DNA of 64,000 bases, from positions 248,001 to 312,000 of the IMG/VR virus record IMGVR_UViG_3300042879_006196; one strand, 5' to 3'. Under the pieces are notes generated by a model, which was not told the origin of the DNA, made no database searches, and was given only the letters and a program-made list of their open reading frames with translations. Each line of letters begins with the position of its first letter. Positions within the stretch are counted from its first letter, which is position 1. Shown here in pieces: positions 781-63,493 of this stretch. A program made the translations under genes and the position numbers.

Positions 781-803
781 CTCCAAAACTTTAATATTAT
801 AAC

Positions 804-1160
804 GTGGCTAATTTATTTTATCGAAACACTAATGCTAAAATTTCTTTTGAAGTTCTTGATGCTAATAATAATTTAGTTGGCTTATCTACTTCAAGAGAGG
901 TATATTGGTATATTTTAACACCTGACAATCAGATTGTGTCAAATGATACAGATATTACCAGTTCTACATTTGCTAATGGCACACCAGTTTACTCTGCCAC
1001 ACCAGTAGTTCAAGAAGAAGAACCAGGCATTTATTACATTAATTATGTGTTGGCAAAGGTAGGTGAGTATAAATATAAATTTCAGGTGATTGACAATCCT
1101 ACATCAACAAATGTAGCTATTTCTGGAAATATAAAAGTAATAACTGACGGAATATTTTAA
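804..1160 (+). CDS. hypothetical beta-rich virion protein
   Basis: 118-aa ORF, GTG start 6 nt after TAATAT; GIYYINY/GEYKYKF strands suggest an Ig-like fold. Confidence 0.5.
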   Translation: MANLFYRNTNAKISFEVLDANNNLVGLSTSREVYWYILTPDNQIVSNDTDITSSTFANGTPVYSATPVVQEEEPGIYYINYVLAKVGEYKYKFQVIDNPTSTNVAISGNIKVITDGIF

Positions 1161-4100
1161 TGGCAAATACTAATAAAAATATATTGATTACTCCTGGTAT
1201 TGGTGGAATTTTATCTTCCTCAATATCACAAATCGATTTTATTTGGTATGAGTCTGGGATAGGCACAAATATTTTTGCTCCGAATATCAATGATCTACGT
1301 TCAACTATATACACTTGGGAACAAAATTCCGAGCCTGTGCTTTTGATTGGTGGTATAGGAACACTAAATAATCAACGAAAATTTGTTGGACCATATCAAG
1401 ATTTTGTTGGCAGTTTCACTGGTATATCAAGTTTTCCTAACATACAATTTTTTCCTTTGTCTGGAAAAATTGTAGGAAACACAATTTCAGTGAGTGGTGT
1501 ATCCACTTTAGCTGGTATATATTTATCAGGTCCTTTATATGATATAAACAACAGAAGTGGATCGTTTGGACAAATATTGTCATCTACCGCATCAGGTGTA
1601 GCCTGGACAAGCATTAGCTATACTGGAATTATTACTGCTATAGGTGGCATCACAAATAGATTAGCGAAATTTTTAGACGAAGATTCTTTAGGAAATAGTT
1701 CAATTATTGATAATGGTACACAAGTTATTTTTGGAGTGGGCGTATCAGTTTTAGGCTTCTCCACTTCTCTTGGGTTTTTTGGACCAGGTACTAATCTTAC
1801 TAATCTGAATGCATCTAATCTTTTCTTTGGCACAGTGCCTAGTTCAGTGGTATCAGGTTCTTATTCAGGCATAACATCTGTCGGAAATCTTTCCAACTTG
1901 TTTGTTACTGGTCTCAGTACATCTCTAGCTTATTTTGGTTTTGGTTCAAATCTTACTAATCTAAATGCATCTAATTTATTCTCTGGAACAGTGCCTAGTT
2001 CAGTGGTATCAGGATCTTATTCAGGTATTACATCTGTTGGTAATTTGTCTAGTTTGTTTGTTACTGGATTAACAACATCCTTCAGCTATTTTGGTTTTGG
2101 TTCAAACCTTACTAATCTAAATGCATCTAATTTATTCTCTGGAACAGTGCCAAGCTCAGTGGTATCAGGATCTTATTCAGGTATTACATCTGTTGGTAAT
2201 TTGTCTAGTTTGTTTGTGACTGGATTAACAACATCCTTCAGCTATTTTGGATTTGGTTCAAACCTTACTAATCTAAATGCATCTAATCTGTTTTCTGGTA
2301 CAGTGCCTTCCGCTCGTATTTCAGGTTCTTACTCAGGTATTACATCTGTTGGTAATTTGTCTAGTTTGTTTGTTACTGGATTAACAACATCCTTCAGCTA
2401 TTTTGGTTTTGGTTCAAACCTAACTAATCTAAATGCATCCAATCTGCTCTCTGGAACAGTGCCTAGTTCAGTGGTATCAGGTTCTTATTCAGGCATTACA
2501 TCTGTTGGTAATTTGTCTAGTTTGTTTGTTACTGGATTAACAACATCCTTCAGCTATTTTGGTTTTGGTTCAAACCTTACTAATCTAAATGCATCTAATT
2601 TATTCTCTGGAACAGTGCCAAGCTCAGTGGTATCAGGATCTTATTCAGGTATTACATCTGTTGGTAATTTGTCTAGTTTGTTTGTGACTGGATTAACAAC
2701 ATCCTTCAGCTATTTTGGATTTGGTTCAAACCTTACTAATCTAAATGCATCTAATCTGTTTTCTGGTACAGTGCCTTCCGCTCGTATTTCAGGTTCTTAC
2801 TCAGGTATTACATCTGTTGGTAATTTGTCTAGTTTGTTTGTTACTGGATTAACAACATCCTTCAGCTATTTTGGTTTTGGTTCAAACCTAACTAATCTAA
2901 ATGCATCCAATCTGCTCTCTGGAACAGTGCCTAGTTCAGTGGTATCAGGTTCTTATTCAGGCATTACATCTGTTGGTAATTTGTCTAGTTTGTTTGTTAC
3001 TGGATTAACAACATCCTTCAGCTATTTTGGATTTGGTTCAAATCTTACTAATCTGAATGCATCTAATCTGTTCTCTGGAACAGTGCCTAGTTCAGTGGTA
3101 TCAGGTTCTTATTCAGGCATTACATCTGTTGGCAATCTATCTAACTTATTTGTGACTGGATTAACAACATCCTTCAGCTATTTTGGATTTGGATCAAACC
3201 TCACTAATCTGAATGCATCCAATCTATTCTCTGGTACGGTGCCTAGCTCAGTGGTATCAGGCTCTTACTCAGGCATAACATCTGTTGGAAATTTGTCTAG
3301 TTTGTTTGTGACTGGATTAACAACATCCTTCAGCTATTTTGGTTTTGGTTCAAACCTAACTAATCTCAATGCATCTAATTTATTCTCTGGAACAGTGCCT
3401 AGTTCAGTGGTATCAGGATCTTACTCAGGTATTACATCTGTTGGAAATTTGTCTAGTTTGTTTGTGACTGGATTAACAACACTTAATAATATAGAAATTG
3501 ATGGTTGGTTAAGAGATTCAAATAACTCAATTGGTTTAAGTGGTCAAATTTTATCTTCTACCTCAAATGGAATTGCGTGGACTTCCATAAGTGCCACTGG
3601 TATTATTACTTCGATAGGAGGATTAACTAATCGTGTTTCAAAATTTGTAGATGAAGATTCTTTAACTAATTCCAATATTACAGACAATGGCTCAGTGGTA
3701 GATGTCAATTCAGTTTTTTCAGTTAGTGGTATTTCTACTTTTGCTAAGGACATAATTGTAAATTTTGTAAATATTGGACTTGGCGAAAATCAAAATATTT
3801 CAAACACTGTTTTTGGAAATCAAGCACTTGTAAATAACACAGGTATCTTTAACGTAGCGATAGGAGCATCTGTTTTAAATGCTAATACCACAGGTTTTTC
3901 AAATGTTGGTCTTGGCTTTAGCGCATTAGCTTTTAACTTATCTGGTTTTGCTAACATTGGTATTGGTGCGAGAGCTTTATCTGGAAATGTATCTGGAAAC
4001 AACAATATTGCAATTGGGCAATTTTCTTTAAGGAGTAATTTAACTGGTGGACAAAACGTAGCAGTAGGAAGGCTTACTTTATTCCAAAACATTTCTGGAA

Positions 4101-7100: not shown

Positions 7101-9538
7101 CAACTATAAGCAATCAAACAGCTGTTGGTTATCAAGCTTTGCGTGGTAATTCTGATACTACTTTGAATACTGGCACAAGCAATGTAGCTATTGGTTATCA
7201 GGCTGGTCTTGCTAATTCATCTGGATTTTTAAATACATACTTAGGACACCAAGCTGGTTTAGCCAATGCCAACGGAACTCACAATACTTTTATAGGCGCA
7301 ACTGTTGGATCGGCTTCTACATCTAATCACAACACGATTATTGGGGCGGCTTCATATCAGGCTAACAACTTGGGCGAAGCAAACATTGTTGTTGGTAGCC
7401 TTTCTGCACAACTAAACACTTCTGGCAGCTACAACACAGTTGTAGGATACAATGTGTTTAATAGTAACACTACTGGTGGTAACAATGCGGCGTTTGGCTT
7501 TAATGCATTAGCGTCTAATAATACTGGTGGTCAAAATATTGCGATTGGTAGATTTGCTTTAAGATACTATAATCAATCAAACCAGGTAGCAATAGGTGAC
7601 CAGGCATTACAAGGTAGTAGCACTGTATCCCTCAACACAGGAACACAAAATACTGCAATAGGATATCAAGCAGGTTTTGCAAATACTTCTGGCTCTAACA
7701 ATGTTTTTGTGGGTTATCAGGCAGGCTTAGCAAATACTTCTGGCACAGATAATACTTTTGTTGGAAGTACGTCAGGAAGAGTAAATGATTCTGGGAGCAA
7801 CAATACGGCAGTGGGTTCAGGATCTTTACCAAGTAACACTTCAGGAACTCTAAACTCTGCTTTTGGTGCTACAGCCCTTAACAGTAACTCTACTGGTTCA
7901 CAAAACTCTGCTTTTGGCTATGGAGCTTTAAATGCCACTATATCTGGTTCTAATAATTCCGCTTTTGGATTTAATGCTTTGCAAAATAATATTTTAACAA
8001 GCGGTAATACTGGCATGGGTAGAGATGCATTAAGATATTACGCTAACTCAGACAATCAAACTGCTGTAGGTTTTGGAGCTTTGCGAGGAAATGGTACTGT
8101 AGCCCTCAACACTGGAACCCAAAATACTGCTATGGGCTATCAGGCTGGTATAGCAAATACCTCTGGCTCTAACAACGTATTTGTCGGTTATCAGGCAGGC
8201 TTAGCAAATACTTCTGGGAGCAACAATACAGCCGTCGGCAATCAATCTTTAGCAAATAACTCAGTTGGTATTCAAAATGTAGCTGTTGGAAGTTTTGCAT
8301 TATTCTATAATTTAAATGGTAATTATAACATTGCTATAGGGCAAGATACTTTAAGAAATTATGAAACACAAGGTTTGCAAATAGCTATTGGGTATAGAGC
8401 TTTAAGAGGAAGTGACACAAGATCTTCTAACACAGGGTTTTCTAACGTTGCTGTAGGAAGAGAAACTTTAAGCATAAATACGTCTGGCTCTAACAACACT
8501 GCTCTTGGAACGTTAGCAGGTACTGTTAATAATAATGGTAATCAAAATACTTTTGTTGGAGCACAAAGTGGGGACGGAAATACTTCAGGGTCTTCAAACA
8601 CATATCTCGGTTATCTCACAGATGGAGCCCCTTCAGGCAACTATCAAATTGCAGTGGGTGATAGTGTAACGCTTACTGCATCCAATCTTGGTGCATGGGG
8701 TGGTAATACTAACTCCACTCGCACTGACCTTGGTATTGGTACTTTTACGCCACTAGCTCGTTTACATGTTGAAACATTAGCCGCTGGAAACATGGGCTTG
8801 TATATTGCAGGATCTGTATCACAAACTGGCGACTTAGTAGAGGTAAATGCCACGGCAAATGGTCAAAACTATTTCACGATTACTGGAATTGGCTCTGTTG
8901 GTATTTATACTTCATTACCTGCACAAGCCTTAGATGTAAGAGGCAATCAGATTGTGTCTGGTATATCAACAGCGTTTAGTTTCTTCGGTTTTGGTTCAAA
9001 CCTTACTAATTTAAATGCATCTAGTCTGTTCTCAGGAACAGTGCCAAGTTCAGTGGTATCAGGATCTTACTCAGGAATAACATCTGTTGGAACATTATCA
9101 CAATTGAGTGTTTCAGGATTTTCTACTTTAAAGAATTTTGAATCTAGTGGTCAATTTAATTTTTATGGAACTTCAAACCTTGATAACCAAAGAGTGTTTA
9201 CTGGAGCATCTTCTTCAATTAATCAAACTACATTTGTAGGCATGACTTCTATTGCAGTTCCTGTTGGTTATCAATTAACAATTGAAGGTAAAATCAATGG
9301 ATGGTTCAATGAAAGTTTCAATGAAAGCGGTAGATTCTTCGCTGTATTTAATAACTCAATTGGAATTGTTTCTATAATTGGTCAGCCAGACATTACATCT
9401 AAATTTGTTGGATCAAGTGGTAATTTTGACATACAAGCCCAAGGACCCAATGTTGTTATTGTTACTAAATCTAACGCATCTTCCAATATGTGGCTATGGA
9501 AAACATCTTATGATTACTTACTTACACAAAATGTATAA
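1160..9538 (+). CDS. giant tail fibre / adhesin-like protein (2792 aa) with 52-aa tandem repeats and YadA-head-like N(T/V)A(V/I)G repeats
   Basis: G/S/T/N-rich ORF; many NTAVG/NVAIG beta-roll repeats and GIGTxxP...LHV.G fibre motifs; tail-module context. Confidence 0.75.
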   Translation: MANTNKNILITPGIGGILSSSISQIDFIWYESGIGTNIFAPNINDLRSTIYTWEQNSEPVLLIGGIGTLNNQRKFVGPYQDFVGSFTGISSFPNIQFFPLSGKIVGNTISVSGVSTLAGIYLSGPLYDINNRSGSFGQILSSTASGVAWTSISYTGIITAIGGITNRLAKFLDEDSLGNSSIIDNGTQVIFGVGVSVLGFSTSLGFFGPGTNLTNLNASNLFFGTVPSSVVSGSYSGITSVGNLSNLFVTGLSTSLAYFGFGSNLTNLNASNLFSGTVPSSVVSGSYSGITSVGNLSSLFVTGLTTSFSYFGFGSNLTNLNASNLFSGTVPSSVVSGSYSGITSVGNLSSLFVTGLTTSFSYFGFGSNLTNLNASNLFSGTVPSARISGSYSGITSVGNLSSLFVTGLTTSFSYFGFGSNLTNLNASNLLSGTVPSSVVSGSYSGITSVGNLSSLFVTGLTTSFSYFGFGSNLTNLNASNLFSGTVPSSVVSGSYSGITSVGNLSSLFVTGLTTSFSYFGFGSNLTNLNASNLFSGTVPSARISGSYSGITSVGNLSSLFVTGLTTSFSYFGFGSNLTNLNASNLLSGTVPSSVVSGSYSGITSVGNLSSLFVTGLTTSFSYFGFGSNLTNLNASNLFSGTVPSSVVSGSYSGITSVGNLSNLFVTGLTTSFSYFGFGSNLTNLNASNLFSGTVPSSVVSGSYSGITSVGNLSSLFVTGLTTSFSYFGFGSNLTNLNASNLFSGTVPSSVVSGSYSGITSVGNLSSLFVTGLTTLNNIEIDGWLRDSNNSIGLSGQILSSTSNGIAWTSISATGIITSIGGLTNRVSKFVDEDSLTNSNITDNGSVVDVNSVFSVSGISTFAKDIIVNFVNIGLGENQNISNTVFGNQALVNNTGIFNVAIGASVLNANTTGFSNVGLGFSALAFNLSGFANIGIGARALSGNVSGNNNIAIGQFSLRSNLTGGQNVAVGRLTLFQNISGNNNSAFGDLALRNWDVSSNQTGIGYQALQGNSTVTLNTGVFNVAIGNMAGMAVSSGSYNTFVGSQSGDQTTTGSNNTFLGGFTNGLISGDYQIAIGQSVVVSGSNQGAWGGTTNVTRTNLGIGTFNPLSRLHVETLAAGNMGLYIAGSASQTADLVEINATTNGQNYFTITGIGSVGIYTSLPSQQFQVNGNARVTGGIFDSNNFIGSANQLLSSTGSGIAWTSTAGAGIVTGAGVATRIAYFSGPNTLTSNSNFIIDSNGNFGISTSAPRNRLEVSSSARFSASVIFYGSTANEAFALTQLFDTTYFNTNNVLRFRQGGSTAGAIAFSFYDFLPNLFMTLDGSNAPRVGIGTTGPLQTLHVGGNTLISGLTTAFSYFGFGSNLTNLNASNLFSGTVPSSVVSGSYTGITSVGNLTNLNVIGISTVTNFRVLNGLYDSNNLVGLANSVLSSTGSGVLWVAPASGGPGGGTINGTIEANRIAFGAASNTITGISTFVYSNQGFIGINTSNPNANLDVQGTFLATGMSTFLNLNVLGRLYDRSVGSGNTGQILVSTNSGVAWTTIDAIFYQLADSQIAFGLGSDTIYGVSTFVYSGGNLGIGTSAPLQTLHVVGNALISGLTTSLAYFGFGSNLTNLNASNLFSGTVPSSVVSGSYAGITSVGNLSNLFVTGIATLVNAEIDGWLKDRSGSIGTLGQVLSSTGSGVAWSSVSSIGIITGSGTINTIAKFGASSSLINSNITDNGIAVTVNSRVFVNGIGSFLGDIFVNQMTVGLGSQQSTGNVAIGFQAFQTASPSASGNVAVGDRAMQTTSNAIFGNVAIGQLALAVNQANRNIAIGAQALSSNTSGTGNIAIGHQALSLSTVDLGNIAIGDRAMRFLTGGSGGNNIAIGGGANLTTAAETTFVGATAGNNYTTQGQHVAVGAYALVGVSTTAATGTQNTAIGYSVMTGITGGSANVGLGHFALNALTSGNSNTGLGYFALVSNTTGSFNVAVGREALRYYTTISNQTAVGYQALRGNSDTTLNTGTSNVAIGYQAGLANSSGFLNTYLGHQAGLANANGTHNTFIGATVGSASTSNHNTIIGAASYQANNLGEANIVVGSLSAQLNTSGSYNTVVGYNVFNSNTTGGNNAAFGFNALASNNTGGQNIAIGRFALRYYNQSNQVAIGDQALQGSSTVSLNTGTQNTAIGYQAGFANTSGSNNVFVGYQAGLANTSGTDNTFVGSTSGRVNDSGSNNTAVGSGSLPSNTSGTLNSAFGATALNSNSTGSQNSAFGYGALNATISGSNNSAFGFNALQNNILTSGNTGMGRDALRYYANSDNQTAVGFGALRGNGTVALNTGTQNTAMGYQAGIANTSGSNNVFVGYQAGLANTSGSNNTAVGNQSLANNSVGIQNVAVGSFALFYNLNGNYNIAIGQDTLRNYETQGLQIAIGYRALRGSDTRSSNTGFSNVAVGRETLSINTSGSNNTALGTLAGTVNNNGNQNTFVGAQSGDGNTSGSSNTYLGYLTDGAPSGNYQIAVGDSVTLTASNLGAWGGNTNSTRTDLGIGTFTPLARLHVETLAAGNMGLYIAGSVSQTGDLVEVNATANGQNYFTITGIGSVGIYTSLPAQALDVRGNQIVSGISTAFSFFGFGSNLTNLNASSLFSGTVPSSVVSGSYSGITSVGTLSQLSVSGFSTLKNFESSGQFNFYGTSNLDNQRVFTGASSSINQTTFVGMTSIAVPVGYQLTIEGKINGWFNESFNESGRFFAVFNNSIGIVSIIGQPDITSKFVGSSGNFDIQAQGPNVVIVTKSNASSNMWLWKTSYDYLLTQNV
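1787..3480 (+). repeat. 11 tandem copies of a 156-bp (52-aa) coding repeat
   Basis: Units start at 1787, 1943, 2099, 2255, 2411, 2567, 2723, 2879, 3035, 3191, 3347; consensus GSNLTNLNASNLFSGTVPSSVVSGSYSGITSVGNLSSLFVTGLTTSFSYFGF. Confidence 0.95.
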
Positions 9539-9568
9539 TTTATTTAAAAATATGGAGGCAAATATTTA

Positions 9569-10288
9569 ATGGCATACTTTCTTGGTCCTGTTTCAGTAAC
9601 AAGCAACTTGTTATACTACTACGACGCCGCAAATCAATTTAGCTACCCCCAATCTGGTAGCACATGGAGAGATTTAAGTGGTTTATCTAATAATGCCACT
9701 TTATCAGGAACAGGATTTTCTACAGATTTCCAAGGTGCAATTACAATGCCAGCTGGCTCTGAAACTATTGTACTTAATGACAATACTTCTATATCAGCTG
9801 CATTCCCCTCAAGTAGCTTTACAATAATAATAGCTGTCAGAGCAAAAGATCAAGCAAGCCCAAGAAGTGCTCTGCCTATGTGGATTCAAGCATCAAACCC
9901 AGTTGCTGCGGCAATCAATAAAGGTTGGCAGGTTGGTGAGGGTGCAAGCTTAAGCGCAATAAATGTTGAAGTAAGTGATGGAGTAAATTATTCTACGATT
10001 GCTTTATCTCATGGTGTGGCACAGACAACTACATATCATAGAGCTTTTGTAGTTGATAGGACAAATGGATGTACAACAAACTATTTTGTTAATGGCGTGT
10101 TGGTTGGAATTGCATCAACTTCAGCTGTAACGGGGACTATATATACTTCAGGTGGTTTTACATTTGGAAACACAGCTGGATGGAGATTTGTGGGAGACAT
10201 TTATATGATACAAGTTTATAGCAGAGCTTTATCTACATCTGAAGTACAACAAAATTTTGCAGCTGTAAGGAGCAGGCTTGGTATATGA
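9569..10288 (+). CDS. LamG / concanavalin A-like lectin domain virion protein
   Basis: YYDAAN..SYP.SGSTWRDLSG N-terminus and F.GDI..IQVYSRALS.SEVQQNF C-terminus; GGAGG upstream. Confidence 0.75.
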   Translation: MAYFLGPVSVTSNLLYYYDAANQFSYPQSGSTWRDLSGLSNNATLSGTGFSTDFQGAITMPAGSETIVLNDNTSISAAFPSSSFTIIIAVRAKDQASPRSALPMWIQASNPVAAAINKGWQVGEGASLSAINVEVSDGVNYSTIALSHGVAQTTTYHRAFVVDRTNGCTTNYFVNGVLVGIASTSAVTGTIYTSGGFTFGNTAGWRFVGDIYMIQVYSRALSTSEVQQNFAAVRSRLGI

Positions 10289-47291: not shown

Positions 47292-47297
47292 ACATTC

Positions 47298-48233: not shown

Positions 48234-48263
48234 TAAATATATCAATGAAAAAGGAGAAAAAAG

Positions 48264-50805: not shown

Positions 50806-50811
50806 TTATTC

Positions 50812-51984: not shown

Positions 51985-54447
51985 CTCGTCATATTTTTTA
52001 CCTTGTTCAAGTTCTGGCAAAATATCTGAAAATTCACTTGAATTAATTACATCATACATCGCTTGTTCTTCTATTCCTCTAAGTTCTTGAGGCATATCAC
52101 CTTGTGTTTTTAAATTATCATCTGTAGTTGGAGTGGGCACTCTTGGAAACAAATTTTCCGTATCTTCTGAATCAATAATTGTATCTGAAACTGGCATGTC
52201 ATTTGCTAAGTTTCCTATTTCATCATCAATTAATTTTGTTGCTTCTGCTGATTCACTATCAGTATTTTCATCAAGTATATCTGCAATTCTTGAAAGTCGC
52301 ACGATGTTTTTTAGAATATTTGCTTTTGTGATGTTGTACATTAATGTTTTATTCTCCAATAAATCAAAAGAACCTGTTTTTAAATTTTTACTCAAGTTAA
52401 AAGAAACCACTGTGTTTTCACAAAAAGTGAGTAGTTCTAATTCTTTATCATCTTTATTTTTGATATCATTGCACCACTGAATTATTTTTTCTAAATCATT
52501 ATCTGATAATCTTAGTTGCTTGATACAATTTTTTAATTCGTTAATCTTTTGAAATTTAACTTTGAATGAAGGAGTACTTTGTCTCATTTTGTTTATTTCT
52601 TCTTTGAGAGAGCTTAGTTCTTGTTCATTTTCATTCAATGAATTGAGTTTAAATCTTATGTTTTTTTCTTGTTCAATTATAATTCTTTGCAGTTCTTGAT
52701 TATAAATTGCATAATTTGATTCTCCAAGTACTGTTCTAATCAAATTAAGATATTTTGATTTCATTTCCTTTGGAGATAAATCAAAATAAAAATTTCTCAA
52801 CATAGATTTTATTTGATTTTTTTGATCTTTTATTGCTGGAAATGTTTTAGAAATTTTATCAATTACACTATCGTCAATCATCCAAGGTTTAGTTATTTTA
52901 ATTGATTCTTCTAATATTTTTCTAGAAATTGCTGCATCCAGTTCTTTTTCTGTCGCAAGTATGAATGAAAGTGCACTAGATTTTATTTTTATTTCAGCAT
53001 TGTTAGGATTATTGATGTTTAAAAAATTGGATAAAAATTGTTTTTGTTCATCAGTTTGATTACATGATTTATACCAAGTGATTAATCTTCCCAAAGGGGT
53101 ATCACGTTGTGGCGCTCTGTTTACCGTAAAAAGGATATTCTTTTTTGTTAATTCCTTTTGAATCATTTTTATAATTTCTTCTGGATTGTCGGTTTTTGGC
53201 TCAGTAAAATGTATTATGTTACAATTAATTGTTTTTGCGAAATTATCTTCTGCATTTACTTTGACTTTGTGTTTAAAATCATATTGAGCAACTTTAAATT
53301 CATTTTTACTTAATGATTTATATTCATCAATGTTTGGGTTTTCAGATCTTTGTTGCAAAAAAGAATCAAATTTTCTTCGATCACTTTCACTTAAGGTGTA
53401 TCCGAAATATTCACCAACAAGCATTATTTCCGTTTCAATTTCAGGAATTTCATTTTGTTTTATTTCATTCAAATCGCTTTTTAACACATCGCAAACCACA
53501 ATGAAGTCAATTAAAAAGTATTCATAAATTGATTCTTCTGGTGATGGAATTTTCATTTTTGAGGGAATATATCTTATATTAAAAACTTCTTTTAAAGTAG
53601 ATAAAACTTTTTTTTCTTTGAGTGATGAATATGTAAATTTAAATTTTTCTGGAAATTCTTCTACAAATAATTTATTTTCTTTTAATGGTTGAATTCTTTC
53701 TTTCAAAAGTTTCAAATCTTCACCATATAAATCACACAAATATGCATAAAATTTTTCTTCATTTCTATCTGATTTATTATAGGCTGTATTTAGTTTTTGG
53801 AGTATTTTTGTATTATCATCTACCATAGAGCGATAGATTTGTTCAGGTGCTTCTTCAGACCAAAAATCAAAACCCAAGTCATTTAATTGTCTTTTAAAAG
53901 TTTCTTTTCCAAATTCAGTGTCAATTGTTTTTATTCGAGACATGTTTGTTTCTGAACTTCTTCCCAGCATCTCATTTAATTTATTTAGAACTTCAGATTT
54001 TTCCACTGACTTCATGTCTAATTTTTTTTCAAGATCTTCTCTGTTATATTTCACTGATAATTTTGCTAAAATTTCTTCAGGTAATTGACCATTAATCAAA
54101 AATTTGTTCCACCATTGATCAGATTTATATTTAAAAACATTTTTTGACATTGTGCCAGCTAAATCTTTAATCTCGTCATCAGTGTAATTTTCTATGCCAG
54201 GTGTTTTATTTATTTTTTCTTTGACTTTTTCTTCTATTATTTTATTTCTTTCGAATCTTAAAAAATTTTGAATTATACTTAAATCAATATTGTTAATCAA
54301 ATCATAAATAAAATTTTGTGTTATTGTAACTTTGTGTTCAATTATTTCTTTAAAAATTTCTTCTGTGATTACAGTAGCCCAATATTGTTTTTGAGCTTCG
54401 GTTAATTTTGTAGCTGCAAACAAAAGTTTATTTTTTATATCTAACAC
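51943..54447 (-). CDS. large hypothetical protein (834 aa)
   Basis: GTG 6 nt after TAAAAT; helical and coiled-coil rich; LSRIADILD motif near the C-terminus. Confidence 0.65.
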   Translation of the reverse strand: MLDIKNKLLFAATKLTEAQKQYWATVITEEIFKEIIEHKVTITQNFIYDLINNIDLSIIQNFLRFERNKIIEEKVKEKINKTPGIENYTDDEIKDLAGTMSKNVFKYKSDQWWNKFLINGQLPEEILAKLSVKYNREDLEKKLDMKSVEKSEVLNKLNEMLGRSSETNMSRIKTIDTEFGKETFKRQLNDLGFDFWSEEAPEQIYRSMVDDNTKILQKLNTAYNKSDRNEEKFYAYLCDLYGEDLKLLKERIQPLKENKLFVEEFPEKFKFTYSSLKEKKVLSTLKEVFNIRYIPSKMKIPSPEESIYEYFLIDFIVVCDVLKSDLNEIKQNEIPEIETEIMLVGEYFGYTLSESDRRKFDSFLQQRSENPNIDEYKSLSKNEFKVAQYDFKHKVKVNAEDNFAKTINCNIIHFTEPKTDNPEEIIKMIQKELTKKNILFTVNRAPQRDTPLGRLITWYKSCNQTDEQKQFLSNFLNINNPNNAEIKIKSSALSFILATEKELDAAISRKILEESIKITKPWMIDDSVIDKISKTFPAIKDQKNQIKSMLRNFYFDLSPKEMKSKYLNLIRTVLGESNYAIYNQELQRIIIEQEKNIRFKLNSLNENEQELSSLKEEINKMRQSTPSFKVKFQKINELKNCIKQLRLSDNDLEKIIQWCNDIKNKDDKELELLTFCENTVVSFNLSKNLKTGSFDLLENKTLMYNITKANILKNIVRLSRIADILDENTDSESAEATKLIDDEIGNLANDMPVSDTIIDSEDTENLFPRVPTPTTDDNLKTQGDMPQELRGIEEQAMYDVINSSEFSDILPELEQGKKYDELKSIIFDKVNEKL

Positions 54448-54496
54448 AATCTTATTTTAAAAGAAATTTAATCAAAAACCTACCGTATATATAATA

Positions 54497-55171: not shown

Positions 55172-55188
55172 ATACCTAAAAACAGATT

Positions 55189-58014
55189 GTGTGGTATCGG
55201 TATTGCAGATTAATTATAGCGAAAAAAGAACATATAATTGCCAAAATTTACAATCATTTTAGGGAAGAATATGAAAATTCTCCAAATGATTTATATATTC
55301 TTGATGATATAAAAGAAAAATTATTAAAATTAGATGAAATAAATTTTTTTGATCAAAACATAATTGAATTAAACACTGATAAAAACACTAATAAAAAAAC
55401 TGTTAATTTTTTAGGAAAAGTTTGTGAAAGTTTAACTGATTTAGCAGAAGCTGTTGATCCCGTGTACGATGAAGTAATGTACAAAAAAGAATATAAACAA
55501 GAAAAGAAAAAACAACAAAGTTTACAAGCTTTAGAGTTTATTGCTGGAGAAGTTCAAGTATATCCCTGCAATGATGTCAATGATACAATAAGATTTGGAA
55601 GGGGTACCACTTGGTGCATTTCTCAACCTGGTACAGGTATTAAAGCTTATAACTCATACAGACTTAATCACCAATCTACTTTTTACTATGTGCAAGATGG
55701 AACAAGAACAGACAATTTGAAAAGAGTGATGGTAGATATGCAAGCAAACGGTGTTGTCAAACTCACTGATTTTGGTAACACCACTGGTACAATAGCTGAA
55801 TTTGGTACAGATTGGCAAGCATATTTTGACTATTTGAAAGAAGAAAAAGAAGTAGATATTTCTCAATTTGTTAATAAACCATTAACAGAAGAAGAAAAAA
55901 AAGAAATCAATACACTTAGTGAAAGAAACACCGATTACGAATGGTTTAAAAAATTATCATCAGATTATAAATCTAAATATATTGGCATGGGTCATCTTTT
56001 GTCTGATGATCAACTAAGATATATTTTGAAAAGTTCTTTGAAAGACATTTTAATTCGGGAGTACTTGAATACAGGTACCTGTATTACAGAAAGCCAAAAA
56101 AATATGTTATTTACAAATAATCAATACAAAAATACTTATGAGTTTAGAAGAACAAATTATATTAATGAAATAAAAGCACAAGTTACTGAAGATTACAAAC
56201 TTAAAAATTTAGCACTGGGTTCAAATGATTTCGATTTAATCACAGAACTTATAAATGAAGGAAAAATTACAAAAGACCAATTCATGAAAGTTCAGTCTCC
56301 TGAAATGTTCTTTTTTTTGATGGATCAAGATTTTGATAAAAAGCGTTTAGTTGAATCTAATGCAGAACATAATTTTACAATTGACTATTTAAGTTCATTG
56401 CCTGCAAACGAGAGCAAAAATCTTTTATCTGGGGTTCTTTTAAGTAATCTGGCTGCAATTAGAAAACTTTATGCTAATGGTATGATAACTAGCAATAATA
56501 TAAATTGGTATGCCGTATTTATATGGAATTATGGATTTGAATTTTCAGATATCGAATTGTTTAGTAACTTGTATAAACAAAGTGTTTTTCAGGAAGATAT
56601 CGATCAAAAATTGAAACAAACTGAAGTTAAAACTCAATATAAAGCAGCTTTTTACCTTTCCAATAATATTAAAACAGATAAACCAATTGATTTCGCAACT
56701 ATATTATCTATAGGTATTGATGAAAAGCTTAAAGCTTTTTATTATCAATATTTTGATACCTTAACGCCAGATCAAAAAAAATATATTCTTGATAGAGTAT
56801 CTTTTGGTTATGGAAATAATAATTTCTTAATATCATTGGGTAAAAAAATAGATTCTCTTGATGAAAAAGATCTATTTAGAGTCATAAACTCAGCTGACGC
56901 ACAAGCAATGTTTGCTTTATCAAAACAACTTGCAAAAAATGATTTGCAAATTTTGATCAACGATGATAAAGCAAGATTCAGTAATCAACTTACCATACAA
57001 TGGCTTTTAAGTAATAATTTTGATGTGCAAGCCAAGAATATGGATTTTGCAGCACTTTTTTCTTCTGATCATGAAATAGCAGATTTTGTTTTTGAAAAAT
57101 TTGAAAACTTAAGTAGTGAGGAACAAAAAAAACTGTTTGGTAGCTTTTACGTCCAACCAAAATCTATTAAAGTAGCAAAATATTTATTTGAAAAAGGCGC
57201 ATCTTATTTCTTAAGGTTTGTTACATTCGACATCATTGATGCAATAATTAGTTCTATGACTAATCTGCCTTATGAAGCATGGGATAATATTTCAGGTAAT
57301 GAAAAAATTTATAACAACAACGAATTTATTATGAAGTATATACCAAATTTAATTGGTAAATTTAGTTTTGCATATAGTGCTCCGTTAAGATTTTTTGACC
57401 TTATCTTTGAGAAATTTAACAATTTTGAACGTAATCAAGATTGGATAGTAAGACAATTTTGTTCTCATAATAAATCTTGCAATGAACAAGTGGCAGAAAA
57501 ATATATAAAAAAATATCCTAGCTTAAAAGAAGTTATTATTCAAGCTTTTGTGGATAATTATAGCGGTAAAATTCCTTCAGAAGATTTTATAAATAAATAT
57601 TACGATGAAATTTCAGAATTTATTGGTTATCTTTATCGCTATAAAAATTTTACTGAAGATTACATAAGAAAATTTGCTGACAAAATAAAATTTGATAGAG
57701 TTCTTATGTCAACAAAAAATTTATCAAATGAATTTTTTGTTGATTTTGAAGAAAAAATTGCTGAGATTCCTGATCGTGAAATGAATGATATACTAGAAAA
57801 TACAACGTTACCTGAATATTTTTTGAGTAAATTTGCACATAAATTTAATGATTATAATTGGCGCCAAATATCAAGAAAATTTCAATTATCTGAAAATTTT
57901 ATTATAAAATTTGCAGATAAATTAGATTTTCAATATATTAAATATAATGAAAATATTCCAGACGTAGTGAAACAAAATTTAAAAGTAAAAGGATATGCAG
58001 TTGATATATTATGA
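55189..58014 (+). CDS. large mosaic protein (941 aa) with C-terminal (L/F)SE.FI..F.DK helical repeats
   Basis: GTTWCIS..YNSY..FYYV.D N-terminal domain; repeats such as LPEYFLSKFAHK, LSENFIIKFADK. Confidence 0.6.
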   Translation: MWYRYCRLIIAKKEHIIAKIYNHFREEYENSPNDLYILDDIKEKLLKLDEINFFDQNIIELNTDKNTNKKTVNFLGKVCESLTDLAEAVDPVYDEVMYKKEYKQEKKKQQSLQALEFIAGEVQVYPCNDVNDTIRFGRGTTWCISQPGTGIKAYNSYRLNHQSTFYYVQDGTRTDNLKRVMVDMQANGVVKLTDFGNTTGTIAEFGTDWQAYFDYLKEEKEVDISQFVNKPLTEEEKKEINTLSERNTDYEWFKKLSSDYKSKYIGMGHLLSDDQLRYILKSSLKDILIREYLNTGTCITESQKNMLFTNNQYKNTYEFRRTNYINEIKAQVTEDYKLKNLALGSNDFDLITELINEGKITKDQFMKVQSPEMFFFLMDQDFDKKRLVESNAEHNFTIDYLSSLPANESKNLLSGVLLSNLAAIRKLYANGMITSNNINWYAVFIWNYGFEFSDIELFSNLYKQSVFQEDIDQKLKQTEVKTQYKAAFYLSNNIKTDKPIDFATILSIGIDEKLKAFYYQYFDTLTPDQKKYILDRVSFGYGNNNFLISLGKKIDSLDEKDLFRVINSADAQAMFALSKQLAKNDLQILINDDKARFSNQLTIQWLLSNNFDVQAKNMDFAALFSSDHEIADFVFEKFENLSSEEQKKLFGSFYVQPKSIKVAKYLFEKGASYFLRFVTFDIIDAIISSMTNLPYEAWDNISGNEKIYNNNEFIMKYIPNLIGKFSFAYSAPLRFFDLIFEKFNNFERNQDWIVRQFCSHNKSCNEQVAEKYIKKYPSLKEVIIQAFVDNYSGKIPSEDFINKYYDEISEFIGYLYRYKNFTEDYIRKFADKIKFDRVLMSTKNLSNEFFVDFEEKIAEIPDREMNDILENTTLPEYFLSKFAHKFNDYNWRQISRKFQLSENFIIKFADKLDFQYIKYNENIPDVVKQNLKVKGYAVDIL

Positions 58015-59211: not shown

Positions 59212-59535
59212 TTAGTTGTTTAGATTAGCTATCTCTTCAGCTTGCTCTAATGTATAAGAATCAACTAAGCCAAGTGCTGGTTGTTCCAGAGCTTCTGTCG
59301 CAGCTTTAACTTTTTCAAGTTCTGACAATATATTACTTAAGTGTTTTTCCACTTCTGTAAGTTTTGTCTCAGACCATGTGCCAGCTCTTCCCATTAAAAA
59401 GTTCAAATTCATGAATTGTACTTTGTTGTGGAATTTGTTGACAATAATATCTATCTTGTAAACGTGCAAAAGCACTTCTTTTAATTTTTCGACTTTTAAT
59501 TTTTCGTCCATGTTTATTTTATACATTTTTTTCAA
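59212..59535 (-). CDS. hypothetical coiled-coil protein
   Basis: 107-aa ORF. Confidence 0.5.
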   Translation of the reverse strand: MKKMYKINMDEKLKVEKLKEVLLHVYKIDIIVNKFHNKVQFMNLNFLMGRAGTWSETKLTEVEKHLSNILSELEKVKAATEALEQPALGLVDSYTLEQAEEIANLNN

Positions 59536-61124: not shown

Positions 61125-61661
61125 TCAGCTAAAAAAAGTAAAATCCTTGTCGGTAAATTTTTCACATTCTTCAAAAGGTTTACCAAGTTTGTCTTTATCT
61201 GACACAATCTGAGGAAAATCTTTCCAAGGAATGTCAAGACTGTTGTAAAGTAAAGATCTGTCATTTTCTTGACAATAATAATTAGAGCATTTGTAATAAA
61301 CCACGCTATTATCTTCTAGCGATTGAAATCCATGTGCAAAGCCTTCTGGAATAAATATAGCCAAATGATTTTCGCTTGATAATTCGATGTCAAACCATTT
61401 ACCAAAATAGGGCGATTGCTCTCTTAAATCTACAGCAACATCATATATTTTTCCTGCCAAACAATACACTAATTTTGCTTGTGGAATTTGAACTTGATAA
61501 TGCATGCCTCTAATCACTCCTTGTTTAGAAATTGAACAATTATCTTGAACAAATTTAACAGGAAAAATTTTATCTTTATGCAAAAAAGTTTCAGTGAATT
61601 GTCCTCTATAATCTTGGAAACATTTTAAATTAACTATTTTAATTCCACCAAAAGGCTCCAT
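61125..61661 (-). CDS. rmlC: dTDP-4-dehydrorhamnose 3,5-epimerase
   Basis: D.RG.F.E, VQDN.S.S..GVIRGMHYQ, QAKLV, DVAVDLR.QSP.FG.W, IPEGFAHGF. Confidence 0.95.
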   Translation of the reverse strand: MEPFGGIKIVNLKCFQDYRGQFTETFLHKDKIFPVKFVQDNCSISKQGVIRGMHYQVQIPQAKLVYCLAGKIYDVAVDLREQSPYFGKWFDIELSSENHLAIFIPEGFAHGFQSLEDNSVVYYKCSNYYCQENDRSLLYNSLDIPWKDFPQIVSDKDKLGKPFEECEKFTDKDFTFFS

Positions 61662-61711
61662 ACACTATTTATACACCAGGAAAATATTGATGATAAGTTT
61701 AAATTAATAAA

Positions 61712-62676: not shown

Positions 62677-62970
62677 ATGGAAAGTTTTCAGAAAGATAGA
62701 AATATTACTGAAATTCCCATTCACCCCACTTATGAAAAAAAAACTGATGGTCATCTTGAGTGGTATAATCATTTAGATTCTATTTACTTTTTTAAAAACC
62801 AAAATGAACTTTTTGATTGTTTTTTTATTATCTTGAACAAAAAAATTTATATATCCTATAATGTTAGAAATAATCTTTCAATAGATTTCATGAAATTTGT
62901 GAAAATCACCGCCCCCACTAATATCAAAGATAAAAAAAGAAGAATATATAAACCCACAAAATTAATGTAA
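62677..62970 (+). CDS. hypothetical protein
   Basis: Start reassigned from TTG 62662 to ATG 62677. Confidence 0.45.
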   Translation: MESFQKDRNITEIPIHPTYEKKTDGHLEWYNHLDSIYFFKNQNELFDCFFIILNKKIYISYNVRNNLSIDFMKFVKITAPTNIKDKKRRIYKPTKLM

Positions 62971-62989
62971 AAAAATTGTATAAAAGATA

Positions 62990-63493
62990 GTGATGAATCA
63001 AATCTGTATCGCTAAAAAACTTTCATATAACAACGTCGAGTTTTTAGATTTTGCAATCAATTCGCAAGATCAAGACAAGCTAATGACTTTTGCCACTTAC
63101 AAAGAGGCTCATGAATACTTAAAAAGTGAGGTTGAAAAACCTGAGGAATTGCTTGATTTCATAATTACAACTATTGACGCTCAAAAAGACAATCCTCGAA
63201 TGAAAGAGCTGTTGGCATTGGGTACTTCAAACCAAGCTCCAACTACTGCCACTCCTCCATCAGCACCAGTAGCTGATGTATCAAGCACCACTGAGGAAGT
63301 GGAATGTTATTTTCTTTTAGATTGTTCAAATTTTGAAATTCTTAATAATGATTCAATTATCGAAAGAGCGACCAATCGTCAGCTTATTCCTGTATTAGCT
63401 TTTGTTGACGCCACTAATCCAGAATCTTTAGTACAAGCTCCAAATTTCAAGCTCAAACAAGCATACATTGGTGTTGCTAAAGACCCTCAATAA
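62990..63493 (+). CDS. hypothetical protein
   Basis: 167-aa ORF; TATAAA 5 nt before GTG. Confidence 0.6.
   Translation: MMNQICIAKKLSYNNVEFLDFAINSQDQDKLMTFATYKEAHEYLKSEVEKPEELLDFIITTIDAQKDNPRMKELLALGTSNQAPTTATPPSAPVADVSSTTEEVECYFLLDCSNFEILNNDSIIERATNRQLIPVLAFVDATNPESLVQAPNFKLKQAYIGVAKDPQ

Follow-up and report, generated by a model that had tools for sequence, protein, structure and literature searches.

How are the genes of a jumbo phage expressed when a promoter-like hexamer, rather than a Shine-Dalgarno (SD) sequence, stands a few bases before many of their start codons? The question was raised by a window of 64,000 nucleotides, the whole stretch analysed here, which is part of one 347,392-bp phage contig (33.6% GC) from lake-water metagenomes. 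A preliminary description had listed 16 starts behind a TAnnAT-like hexamer in this window and proposed that such accessory genes have their own promoters and leaderless translation, as opposed to SD-led structural genes. Among the genes of the phage are at least two for sigma-70-family factors and one for a NusG homologue, and the catalytic-domain families of the two largest RNA polymerase subunits were not matched anywhere in its genome. We called genes and chose starts by our own procedure, refining the starts with the motif in mind; the only two candidate RNA runs holding phage DNA resembled low-coverage DNA contigs and revealed no transcript 5' ends.

A G-preceded hexamer before start codons

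We compared the regions upstream of the start codons with AT-matched controls, and a -10-like hexamer at a distance of 6 nt (range 5-8) was far commoner there than in the controls. TAnnAT stood exactly 6 nt upstream of 10 of the 65 window starts, against a mean of 0.7 at offsets shifted by 12-31 nt, and at the same distance it preceded only about 0.5% of internal ATGs (Fisher p = 1.6e-11 versus the starts). Likewise, exact TATAAT was present at 5-8 nt in 6 of the 65 window starts, compared with 0.7 +/- 0.8 when the 30 nt upstream were shuffled with their composition kept. The hexamer of the preliminary description is indeed real and more pronounced than had been claimed, and its enrichment was retained against shifted offsets, internal ATGs and shuffles. 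The loosest pattern, TAnnnT at 5-8 nt, was weakly enriched in the window (17 versus 12.0 +/- 3.1); the signal resides in a specific motif and its 6-7 nt spacing. Genome-wide, hexamers matching TATAAT in at least five of six positions peaked 6 nt before the first start codon, with a flat profile past 10 nt. Among the 56 genes with such a hexamer, the early region being left out, the commonest spacing was 6 nt (32 genes), followed by 7 nt (14), 8 nt (6) and 5 nt (4), and in the early gene class TATAAT lies just 4 nt before the ATG.

The base immediately 5' of the hexamer, which had not been selected for, was G in 43 of the 56 genes against a background of 17% (binomial p = 9e-23), and the base ahead of this G is T or C. 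The motif reads (T/C)G-TA(T/C)AAT, which is sharper than the TAnnAT word originally proposed. GTATAAT or GTACAAT was followed by a gene start 5-8 nt downstream in 27 of 130 occurrences, whereas [A/C/T]TATAAT or [A/T]TACAAT was so in only 7 of 893 (odds ratio 33, p = 1e-19), and the G before the hexamer is the decisive base. When a G-TA[T/C]AAT word lies within 100 nt upstream of a start (n = 39), it is mostly found at 5-9 nt (28 words), and genes starting 6-7 bases after it make up about one third of the window genes. Genes of the strict set begin with ATG or GTG and never with TTG, in keeping with a purine as the first transcribed base and an AUG or GUG at the very 5' end of the mRNA. No strict case (spacing 5-9) contains an SD word, nor does the 5-8 nt spacer hold one. 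Furthermore, the 89 leaderless-type genes belong to 86 distinct families, so that the motif is not caused by gene duplication.

The start codons themselves are, judging by Pfam boundaries in most tested cases and by aligned N-termini, correct. Pfam domains begin at residues 2-10 of the proteins starting at 39234-, 39275, 47270-, 47298 and 61661-, and RmlD_sub_bind matches the 29465- protein from residue 3, at an E value (0.007) below the curated cut-off, which fits its start. Outside the window, domain starts likewise support the starts of Pol III alpha, DnaJ, DnaK and an NTP transferase, and a pilin-like N-terminal methylation motif supports a further one. In addition, the N-termini of eight homologues of the 512-aa NTP-transferase-like protein (39234-) align at M-x-x-FDVIITCSG.

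With this 512-aa protein as an anchor, we found the relatives L006-L010, which share 46-66% identity in it; the genes of L007-L010 had been called by others, and L006 was read with our own ORF listing. Of the 105 independently called starts in L007-L010, 13 had a 5-of-6 hexamer at 6 nt; at offsets 9-34 the mean was 1.15 (Poisson p = 4e-10). All five relatives contain 22-23 nt divergent pairs around TTGTACAA. The spacer sequence changes, but the motif and its distance stay the same. L008 has a matching 824-aa gene with the same TAAAAT-6-GTG layout as 54447-, and both L007 and L008 keep the 68-aa gene with its SD, the counterpart of 48264.

Transcription-unit heads, divergent pairs and leadered genes

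We then related the motif, under a relaxed definition with a background of about 12% among internal genes, to gene arrangement. Of 61 head-to-head starts, 34 had it, as compared with 12 of 103 internal genes, meaning genes that overlap their upstream neighbour or lie at most 10 nt from it (odds ratio 9.5, p = 2e-9); within the window it preceded 19 of the 24 head-to-head starts. The motif marks the heads of transcription units. At six places in the window, divergent start codons are only 22-27 nt apart, which leaves no room for leaders, and five pairs at 22-24 nt surround a GTAC-centred palindrome that serves both strands. TACAAT is the hexamer at divergent pairs and mostly TATAAT at putative single promoters.

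The individual sites are collected in Table 1, where a site counts as strong if a TAnnnT hexamer 5-8 nt before ATG or GTG agrees with TATAAT at five or more of its six positions and has a G directly 5' of it. By this measure, 10 of the 16 starts listed previously are strong and 3 are moderate, two (804 and 61712) are weak, and 55189 fails. At least 11 sites had been missed, namely those of the five bidirectional rows and 59511-.

Table 1. Putative promoter words and SD-led genes in the window (hexamer coordinates in brackets)
Class	Positions	Strand	Layout	Gene and remarks
Strong	19851..19866	+	cG-TATATT (19852-19857), 6 nt, ATG 19864	178 aa; word overlaps GroEL end
Strong	24480..24496	-	tG-TATAAT (24490-24495), 7 nt, ATG 24482	292 aa
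Strong	24796..24811	-	cG-TAGAAT (24805-24810), 6 nt, GTG 24798	ClpS homologue, 99 aa
Strong	25487..25502	+	tG-TATAAT (25488-25493), 6 nt, ATG 25500	143 aa
Strong	29463..29479	-	tG-TATAAT (29473-29478), 7 nt, ATG 29465	NAD-dependent epimerase, 300 aa
Strong	50800..50814	+	cG-TATAAT (50801-50806), 5 nt, ATG 50812	DUF7831, 127 aa; word within 3' end of preceding gene
Strong divergent pair	39234..39275	-/+	40 nt apart; tG-TATAAT-8-ATG 39234-, tG-TACAAT-6-ATG 39275+	39234-, 512-aa NTP-transferase-like; 39275+, family-2 glycosyltransferase
Strong divergent pair	47270..47298	-/+	27 nt apart; aG-TATAAT-6-ATG 47270-, tG-TAAAAT-6-ATG 47298+	47270-, family-2 glycosyltransferase, domain from residue 5; 47298+, GDP-mannose-dehydratase-like, domain from residue 9-10
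Bidirectional	18205..18230	-/+	ATGs 24 nt apart around TTTGTACAAA; G-TACAAA 7 nt before each ATG (18213-18218 -, 18217-18222 +)	18205-, 104 aa; 18230+, GroEL, 539 aa
Bidirectional	30962..30985	-/+	ATGs 22 nt apart: 6 nt + palindrome ATTGTACAAT + 6 nt	
Bidirectional	33626..33649	-/+	GTG 33626- and ATG 33649+, 22 nt apart: 6 nt + ATTGTACAAT + 6 nt	
Bidirectional	41787..41810	-/+	ATGs 22 nt apart around GTTGTACAAC; hexamer TACAAC, no final T	
Bidirectional	44556..44580	-/+	ATG 44556-, ATG 44577 or 44580+, around ATTGTACAAT; 6 nt on - side, 4 or 7 nt on + side	+ gene, FkbM methyltransferase
Moderate	54445..54460	-	tT-TAAAAT (54454-54459), 6 nt, GTG 54447; no G	834 aa; GTG within a copy of AGATTGTGT
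Moderate	61659..61674	-	tG-TATAAA (61668-61673), 6 nt, ATG 61661	dTDP-4-dehydrorhamnose 3,5-epimerase, domain from residue 5
Moderate	62978..62995	+	tG-TATAAA (62979-62984), 5 nt to GTG 62990 or 8 nt to ATG 62993	167 aa
Relaxed variant	59509..59524	-	tG-TATAAA (59518-59523), 6 nt, ATG 59511	99 aa
Weak	792..806	+	tT-TAATAT (792-797), 6 nt, GTG 804; no G	inside co-directional structural gene run
Weak	61712		TAAATT, no G before hexamer	
Unsupported	55177..55191	+	TAAAAA without final T, GTG 55189	GTG inside repeated 9-mer AGATTGTGT
Leadered use	9533..9571	+	tG-TATAAT (9534-9539), 29 nt including SD GGAGG, ATG 9569	virion-protein-like, 239 aa
Leadered use	48228..48266	+	cG-TATAAT (48229-48234), 29 nt including SD AAGGAG, ATG 48264	68 aa
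SD-led	22430..22480	+	TATATAAA, hairpin 22436-22463, SD AAGGAG, ATG 22478	354 aa

Under the relaxed definition, about 89 genes of the genome are of the leaderless type; about 60 have an SD-like word and about 146 have neither, and most window genes likewise have neither signal. Genes carrying the motif at the start codon have no SD. The four SD sites reported initially, GGAGGT before 499 and those before 9569, 22478 and 48264, are genuine, and SD-like sites also occur at 10285, 30172 and 45200. The suggested contrast of SD-led structural with leaderless accessory genes is only a rough one, since core replication and chaperone genes are among the leaderless-type set (Pol III alpha, beta clamp, DnaK, DnaJ and GroEL, along with a sigma factor and NusG), while ribonucleotide reductase is SD-led. 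Moreover, the SD-led genes at 9569 and 48264 share the same G-TATAAT word 29 nt upstream, so that promoter type and leader type are separable. The 354-aa gene (ATG 22478) is followed by a strong terminator at 23560-23588 and had no PHROGs match; its strong SD and flanking hairpins invite the guess that it is the capsid gene.

Promoter class and alternative explanations

We also asked which promoter class the motif resembles. No position upstream of -15 had information content for a -35 box in the 56 genes, a TTGACA-like box 16-18 nt upstream of the -10, as in the canonical sigma-70 layout, was not found, and full -35/-10 sites were not enriched in the window (103 versus 104 +/- 10 in shuffles). 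The classical extended -10 carries TG at -15/-14, one base from the hexamer. This class was rejected, because the conserved G adjoins the hexamer at position -13, and a G two bases before it occurred in only 2 of the 56 genes. The T4-type late promoter TATAAATA was rejected on its 29 and 27 copies per strand versus 51.5 expected per strand, and the Bacteroidota primary-sigma promoter (-7 TAnnTTTG) on the lack of a positional peak upstream of genes; only 54 of the 650 TAnnTTTG copies are intergenic, though intergenic DNA accounts for 17% of the genome. In contrast to these classes, a TANNNT-type hexamer 6-7 bp upstream of the start, as in leaderless genes, was present above chance, and so were opposite-strand -10 elements overlapping at a preferred spacing, as in symmetric bidirectional promoters, when the start codons are taken as start sites. 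Recognition of a -10 by a primary sigma normally cannot do without the final T of the hexamer. Some accepted-looking sites have another base there, namely those with TACAAC (41787/41810), TACAAA (the GroEL pair, and also relatives) and TATAAA (61661 and 62990), and the recogniser may thus not be a standard group-1 sigma, or the sites without the final T may be weak.

The best reading, to which we assign a probability of roughly 0.7 from the sequence patterns, is that these are -35-less promoters giving leaderless mRNAs. (T/C)G-TA(T/C)AAT would be the -10 element of a promoter class without a -35 box, which the phage sets 6-7 bp ahead of the leading gene's start codon in many short transcription units. 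Bacterial RNA polymerase normally starts about 7 nt past the -10 hexamer, so that the first transcribed base would be the A of an ATG or the G of a GTG, and the mRNA, having neither 5' leader nor SD, would be translated as a leaderless mRNA. Where units diverge, two -10 elements would overlap on opposite strands; in the self-complementary core G-T-A-C, the essential G of one promoter would pair with hexamer position 3, a C, of its partner, which fits the choice of TACAAT at divergent pairs and mostly TATAAT at single sites. The product would be a 22-bp intergenic region (6 + ATTGTACAAT + 6) with presumed 5' ends 23 bp apart. With the promoter word moved 29 nt upstream, as at 9569 and 48264, a normal SD-containing leader would result. 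The sequences themselves establish the motif and its spacing, the need for the G, the link with unit heads, the start-codon positions and the persistence in relatives. We infer promoter function for the word, a 5' end at the start codon, and a reading holoenzyme that contains the host primary sigma or a phage sigma factor. Of the original proposal of own promoters and leaderless translation, what stands is a promoter-like element that is too near the start for an SD leader, occurs at unit heads and is kept in relatives.

Chance, by which the hexamers would be a by-product of AT-rich intergenic DNA (about 30% GC) and the starts picked to fit, is very improbable. The low GC content of the genome, the barely enriched TAnnnT and the motif-guided refinement of starts speak for it, but the enrichment persisted with blindly chosen starts (longest ORF or first ATG) as well as in all the control comparisons; the G was never selected for, gene calls by others in the relatives gave the same peak, and domain boundaries support the starts. 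An RNA-level role is unlikely on other grounds. GUAUAAU or GUACAAU 6-7 nt before AUG could substitute for the SD, as a ribosome or S1 landing site on leadered mRNAs with promoters elsewhere, and the word does occupy the SD place (5-9 nt before the start) in genes without SD, in a genome with low SD use where genes lacking both signals are A-rich upstream. An SD-type signal would, however, serve internal overlapping genes as well as unit heads, whereas the word clusters at the latter and is rare before the former. No alternative conserved promoter element was found within 40 nt upstream, and for divergent ATGs 22 nt apart another promoter would have to sit inside the opposite gene. Furthermore, the word cannot be a ribosome site 29 nt upstream of two SD-bearing genes, and both its near-consensus sequence and its canonical distance to the presumed first base are those of a bacterial -10.

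Slightly less improbable, yet still doubtful, is that TTGTACAA is an operator bound by a dimeric phage regulator that co-regulates divergent units, the proximity to starts being a by-product of compact intergenic regions. Perfect 8-10 bp palindromes at the five divergent pairs of the window and at several in relatives agree with this, as do the whole 22-nt spacer of L007, which is palindromic, and the TACAAA and TACAAC variants, which lack the final T but retain the palindromic core. Nevertheless, most copies are single, one-directional and non-palindromic (G-TATAAT, G-TAAAAT, G-TATATT) at the same 6-7 nt distance, an operator needs no fixed register with the start codon, and two overlapping opposite-strand G-TANAAT elements necessarily yield a palindrome. 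Operator and promoter roles are compatible.

The preliminary description also saw in the layout a hint at a host lineage with many leaderless mRNAs; this idea gained no support, and the phage sigma-70-family factors and NusG homologue could run the leaderless programme themselves. A more far-reaching and tentative picture is a freshwater jumbo phage lineage whose own sigma reads G-TA(T/C)AAT, and which expresses many of its non-structural genes (those for replication, chaperones, nucleotides and glycan synthesis) through leaderless mRNAs, with 22-bp two-way promoters as well. If this is true, self-complementary 22-bp promoters would launch two leaderless mRNAs 23 bp apart, and, with the early class, expression throughout the phage would bypass host-type promoters and ribosome-binding sites.

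Comparison with known systems

Phage-specific promoter classes in very large phage genomes are also known from phiKZ (PMC8244752) and AR9 (PMC5312081). These phages have their own multisubunit polymerases and leaders of at least 26 nt, and no leaderless transcript was found in phiKZ (PMC8244752), whereas the present phage gave no match to the catalytic domains of the two largest RNA polymerase subunits and has putative promoters that abut the start codons. The divergent pairs resemble symmetric bidirectional promoters (Warman et al., bioRxiv 10.1101/2020.01.31.928960; PMC12825309) in their opposite-strand -10 overlap and preferred short start-site distance. In E. coli, 23 bp is one enriched symmetric spacing (bioRxiv 10.1101/2020.01.31.928960), but the common arrangement is 18 bp, in contrast to 23 bp in the phage, where the presumed 5' ends are the start codons, the whole intergenic region is 22 bp, and the extra G requirement puts GTAC at the centre of the symmetry.

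A similar layout is that of Deinococcus-Thermus and Actinobacteria, with a TANNNT-type -10 lying 6-7 bp before the start and no SD (PMC12340547, PMC3160421, PMC4633059); in Deinococcus-Thermus, leaderless genes are marked by TANNNT at 6-7 bp upstream of the ORF (PMC12340547). As in the phage window, about one third of the genes have this layout in D. radiodurans, and a second class with GGAG-type ribosome sites stands beside the leaderless class in Deinococcus-Thermus. The differences lie in a GC-rich bacterium versus an AT-rich lake-water jumbo phage lineage known here from sequence alone, and in TACACT versus the near-consensus TATAAT/TACAAT; the required adjacent G, the tie to operon heads and the GTAC-centred bidirectional pairs are specific to the phage.

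Finally, the Thermus phages phiYS40 and P23-45 produce leaderless middle and late mRNAs, which are most of these mRNAs in phiYS40, from -35-independent extended -10 promoters with the host RNA polymerase (PMC3594737, PMC4124052). They share with our phage a large genome relying on the host core polymerase and a promoter class with no need for a -35, but differ in host type, GC content and temperature range, and in using the classical TGn extended -10 instead of a G adjoining the hexamer. In our phage, moreover, the structural genes are not the leaderless class, and it has sigma-family and NusG genes of its own. By analogy with phiYS40 (PMC3594737), leaderless translation might resist host shut-off, and as in the Thermus phages it may be a means of favouring phage over host expression.

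Hexamers before the start codons

We analyzed 321 genes called by self-trained coding potential; for the first test, starts were set blindly, taking either the longest ORF or the first ATG. Near-TATAAT hexamers before start codons formed two peaks across the genome, at 4 nt and 6 nt, with a flat profile past 10 nt. The 4-nt peak belongs to a separate early-gene cassette outside the window, and the 6-nt peak is the signal of the preliminary description, which had claimed a TAnnAT-like hexamer 5-8 nt before 16 window starts. This enrichment persisted against an AT-matched background, as TAnnAT lay exactly 6 nt before 10 of the 65 window starts versus a mean of 0.7 at offsets shifted by 12-31 nt, and internal ATGs showed the same arrangement at a rate of about 0.5% (Fisher p = 1.6e-11 versus the window starts). 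In the window, the exact TATAAT was observed 6 times at 5-8 nt, where composition-matched shuffles gave 0.7 +/- 0.8; TAnnnT, the loose pattern, was barely raised at this distance (17 against a background of 12). Ten of the 16 originally listed sites proved strong and three moderate; those at 804 and 61712 were weak, the one at 55189 was unsupported, and at least 11 further sites of the same kind, including that of the GroEL gene, were absent from the list.

The true motif is sharper than TAnnAT. When 56 genes, chosen solely by hexamer and spacing with the early region excluded, were aligned on the hexamer, its 5'-adjacent base was G in 43 of them, compared with a 17% background frequency (binomial p = 9e-23), and the base preceding this G was T or C. 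No position further upstream carried information in these genes, and the -35 box is therefore absent. A consensus scan for complete -35/-10 promoters likewise returned no excess (103 versus 104 +/- 10 in shuffles). The adjacent G is the deciding base for the link between motif and start, since a gene start stood 5-8 nt behind 27 of the 130 copies of GTATAAT and GTACAAT, whereas for ATATAAT, CTATAAT, TTATAAT, ATACAAT and TTACAAT this held for 7 of 893 copies (odds ratio 33, p = 1e-19). A start lay within 100 nt downstream of 39 G-TA[T/C]AAT words, for 28 of them at 5-9 nt; the few more distant words include those of the starts 9569 and 48264, where the word stands 29 nt upstream and the leader bears a good Shine-Dalgarno (SD) sequence. 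The strict set used ATG or GTG as start codons, and never TTG. Genome-wide, the G-preceded 7-mers were rarer than expected, as in the case of GTATAAT (81 versus 157 expected), and the [A/C]TATAAT words were similarly depleted.

Two-way units, relatives and the promoter reading

The motif marks the heads of transcription units, as it preceded 34 of 61 head-to-head starts, whereas among internal genes overlapping or almost abutting the gene upstream, 12 of 103 carried it (odds ratio 9.5, p = 2e-9); for the window alone, the figure was 19 of 24 head-to-head starts. The start codons of six divergent window pairs were separated by 22, 22, 22, 23, 24 and 27 nt. The typical two-way unit consists of 6 nt, the palindrome ATTGTACAAT and another 6 nt, a shape that follows from two overlapping G-TANAAT elements on opposite strands. 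Since G-T-A-C is self-complementary, the G required by one promoter would pair with the C at hexamer position 3 of the other. The hexamers indeed fit this G-C pairing in the GTAC core, as TACAAT occurs in the divergent pairs and mostly TATAAT, TAAAAT or TATATT in the single promoters.

We then investigated relatives, found through the anchor protein, the 512-aa NTP-transferase-like product of 39234-. Phage-like metagenome contigs, the longest of 240 kb, yielded about 20 homologues (46-66% identity), and five loci of 29.5-34% GC were taken, of which L007-L010 were read with the collections' own gene calls (105 starts) and L006 with our own ORF listing. In L007-L010, a hexamer matching at five of six positions lay 6 nt before 13 of the 105 starts, where offsets 9-34 gave 1.15 on average (Poisson p = 4e-10), with the consensus tTG-TACAA(T/A); L006 showed the same layout. 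Divergent pairs of 22-23 nt recurred in L006, L007, L009 and L010, four of the five loci, and the entire 22-nt spacer of the L007 pair 7987/8010 is a perfect palindrome. The orthologous promoter of the anchor gene was kept in L006-L009, the four loci with a well-placed start, although the spacer sequence differs, so that a MAFFT alignment of the orthologous promoter regions was poor; a start-anchored listing served as the usable conservation evidence. The N-termini of the anchor proteins align at M-x-x-FDVIITCSG, indicating that one deposited start call is overlong and another too short: the deposited start in L006 (676-711) is 8 codons too long, with an ATG at 700 behind tG-TATAAT-7, and the deposited gene in L010 (about 9,970-10,001) is truncated within the conserved DVIITCSG.

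Chance is ruled out as the origin of the pattern by the shifted-offset, internal-ATG and shuffle controls together with the G statistics, and paralogy by the distribution of the 89 leaderless-type genes, those with the motif, in a relaxed form, next to the start codon, over 86 families. A T4-type late promoter was rejected, and so was the classical extended -10, as the G conserved in the 56-gene alignment stands at -13 and does not form TGn. As to whether the motif is a promoter or a ribosome site, its concentration at the heads of transcription units favours the former, and so do the closely spaced divergent starts, where a leader would have to originate within the opposite gene, in which nothing else is conserved. 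The promoter reading is also favoured because G-TA(T/C)AAT recurs at a normal promoter distance from genes with their own SD, and because its sequence and distance fit a bacterial -10 element and the 7-nt step to the first base. In bacteria, the first transcribed base usually lies 7 nt on from the -10 element. The start codons themselves are anchored by Pfam domains opening at residue 2-10 in 39234-, 39275, 47270-, 47298 and 61661-, and that of 29465- agrees with a below-cut-off RmlD_sub_bind match from residue 3; outside the window, those of Pol III alpha, DnaJ, DnaK, an NTP transferase and a protein with a pilin-type N-terminal methylation motif are likewise anchored. The leaderless-promoter reading is thus the best explanation, with a probability of about 0.7, and the geometry suggests that the transcript 5' end would coincide with the start codon.

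Some accepted-looking sites have no final T in the hexamer (TACAAC, TACAAA and TATAAA). The primary sigma factor normally requires this T. This, together with the non-TGn G at -13, suggests that a sigma factor encoded by the phage itself may recognise the motif, or that the palindrome may additionally be an operator.

Genome, gene classes and the early cassette

The phage is an uncultured freshwater jumbo phage, represented by a single contig of 347,392 bp (33.6% GC; IMG/VR virus record, rated 99% complete) that carries 23 tRNA genes and one tmRNA, with nearly identical DNA in at least 18 lake-water metagenome DNA runs. It encodes GroEL, two DnaK, DnaJ, Pol III alpha, the beta clamp, ThyX and ribonucleotide reductase, as well as two clear sigma-70-family ORFs with both regions 2 and 4, a third weak one, and a NusG homologue. 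Nothing on the contig matched Rpb1 domain 1 or Rpb2 domain 6, the catalytic-domain families that represent the two largest subunits of RNA polymerase, and the phage would thus be obliged to use the host core polymerase. Standard reading sufficed, with no alternative genetic code needed or applied. A DNA search gave no near relative among the reference phages. In the host search, the S-adenosylhomocysteinase homologue matched many phyla at 55-61% identity, the atlas neighbours of NusG and the ECF-like sigma factor were scattered over phyla, with Bacteroidota marginally first for NusG, and the Bacteroidota promoter word TAnnTTTG was not enriched in the genome. The 'moraphages', aquatic jumbo phages with predicted Bacteroidota hosts that carry DnaK/DnaJ and glycosyltransferases and have no RNA polymerase (PMC12619734), resemble the phage in the chaperones, the many glycosyltransferases and the missing RNA polymerase, a likeness of gene content alone that we take as a lead.

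According to our own calls with a relaxed motif, leaderless-type genes number about 89 in the genome and early-cassette genes about 26-40; an SD-like word precedes about 60 genes (a strong SD in 26), and about 146 have neither signal, their upstream regions being simply A-rich and C-poor. The leaderless-type genes form a non-virion programme of replication, chaperones, transcription factors, and nucleotide and glycan enzymes. The proposed division, with structural genes SD-led and accessory genes leaderless, is no more than approximate, as the 354-aa gene and virion-like proteins are SD-led, but so is ribonucleotide reductase. From its strong SD and flanking hairpins, we guess that the 354-aa gene is the major capsid gene; it matched no PHROGs family and had no IMG/VR relative.

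The glycan cluster of the window includes several NAD-dependent epimerases/dehydratases, family-2 glycosyltransferases, an FkbM methyltransferase, nucleotidyl transferases and a HAD hydrolase, arranged in many short divergent units. The cluster is syntenic in the relatives, where GT10, GT11, GT25 and an aminotransferase also appear among the precomputed annotations. Related strains at 90-99% identity to window 43,000-48,900 occur in other aquatic metagenomes, and one lake contig joins 45064 to 46308, with 1,243 nt missing and 15 other letters instead, which suggests a strain variant without, or with replaced, intervening gene(s). Two runs labelled 'RNA-Seq' contained about 22% of the sampled words; over window 43000-48900 (5,901 letters), they yielded patchy, low-coverage, DNA-like contigs of related strains, in which intergenic DNA was spanned and nothing pointed to transcript starts.

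Features of the window and of the whole phage contig (G000:C1); a trailing sign gives the strand
Feature	Location	Remarks
Five divergent pairs	window 18205/18230, 30962/30985, 33626/33649, 41787/41810, 44556/44577-80	22-24 nt, palindrome-centred
Large virion-type genes	window 1-16.8 kb	include proteins of 2,792 and 1,234 aa
354-aa SD-led gene	window, start 22478	hairpin right before SD (22436-22463); strong terminator behind gene (23560-23588)
Sugar-nucleotide and glycan synthesis/modification cluster	window 23,600-48,250	about 25 genes, dense
RmlC homologue	window 61125-61661	outside the glycan cluster
9-mer AGATTGTGT in the window	e.g. 931+, 8949+, 20624+, 25832+, 54444-, 55184+	39 copies
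Chaperones GroEL, ClpS, DnaJ, two DnaK	window 18230-19849, 24499-24798; G000:C1 227,842-228,798, 231,062-232,687, 333,717-335,582	leaderless-type starts throughout
Early start-codon-abutting cassette	G000:C1 ~3,400-66,000, + strand	~26-40 small early-type genes; outside the window
Array of degenerate ~165-nt repeats	G000:C1 ~14,400-33,500	long; ..ATGATTAATACAGATTGTGTGGA.., CAGGTG-rich; outside the window
Second sigma-family protein; ECF-like sigma factor	G000:C1 119,943-120,662; ~320,400-320,987, in L001-L003, stretches of the same contig (~317,700-322,200)	239 aa; 195 aa
NusG homologue		176 aa; own start G-TATAAT-6-ATG
TnpB/Cas12f-like ORF and radical-SAM protein	phage contig	

In the early cassette, a GC-rich hairpin (ccctccaaagggg...) is followed by a T-run, TTCCAGGTTTAACA, 9 nt, TATAAT, agat and ATG; the arrangement is far more uniform than the window motif, its spacing being 4 nt almost throughout, with a few copies at 5-7 nt. 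With this 4-nt spacing and the standard -10 distance, transcription would start within or past the ATG; either initiation takes place unusually near the hexamer (5 nt), or translation from these ATGs relies on a different transcript. The pattern had no exact IMG/VR match beyond this genome. Its spacer contains, in either orientation, the 9-mer AGATTGTGT (extended tCAGATTGTGT), as in TTTA-ACACAATCT-GAT-TATAAT. The 9-mer has 336 copies in the genome versus about 4 expected, on both strands and within genes in both senses, with roughly threefold intergenic enrichment, and might, as a guess, be the binding site of a phage protein. The array of degenerate repeats, where our own caller found almost no genes, holds 82 copies; the closest relative, L007, has 11 in 21.5 kb, and the more distant relatives 0-2. 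The GTGs at 54447 and 55189 fall within copies of this 9-mer.

Significance and comparison with known systems

If confirmed, the two-way units and their one-way counterparts would represent a very compact natural promoter design, with no untranslated region and 22 bp per two genes. They would also provide a start-calling rule for such metagenomic phages, at least two relatives' starts having been mis-set by gene callers, and a handle on how a polymerase-less phage separates its gene classes, for which the candidates are G-TATAAT beside the ATG, G-TATAAT combined with an SD leader, and the distinct early cassette. An advantage of leaderless translation after host takeover would then become testable.

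Well-documented cases of leaderless expression come from Deinococcus-Thermus, Actinobacteria and archaea, and from a few phages that infect such hosts; the word 'leaderless' was not found in the top-ranked jumbo/huge-phage literature. The closest match to the phage layout is the ORF-adjacent -10 motif of Deinococcus-Thermus, where TANNNT lies 6-7 bp before about one third of the ORFs and is a proven promoter for leaderless mRNA (PMC12340547), followed by the leaderless middle and late genes of Thermus phages with their -35-independent promoters (PMC3594737, PMC4124052). The Thermus phage phiYS40 is also a precedent for the idea that leaderless translation resists shut-off (PMC3594737); such resistance and a host lineage rich in leaderless mRNAs, both raised in the preliminary description, are conjectures for this phage. 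In contrast to the present layout, leaders are long in the two jumbo phages whose start sites have been mapped: phiKZ yielded no leaderless transcript, and the leaders of AR9 measure 26-491 nt (PMC8244752, PMC5312081). If transcription begins at the start codons, the two 5' ends of a two-way unit would lie 23 bp apart, a spacing shared with the symmetric bidirectional promoters of E. coli, in which 23 bp is among the enriched symmetric spacings of divergent start sites and 18 bp is the commonest (bioRxiv 10.1101/2020.01.31.928960). The principle is thus already known, and what is new is its appearance in an AT-rich freshwater jumbo lineage, the G directly adjoining the hexamer in the word G-TA(T/C)AAT, and two-way units of 22 bp centred on GTAC.
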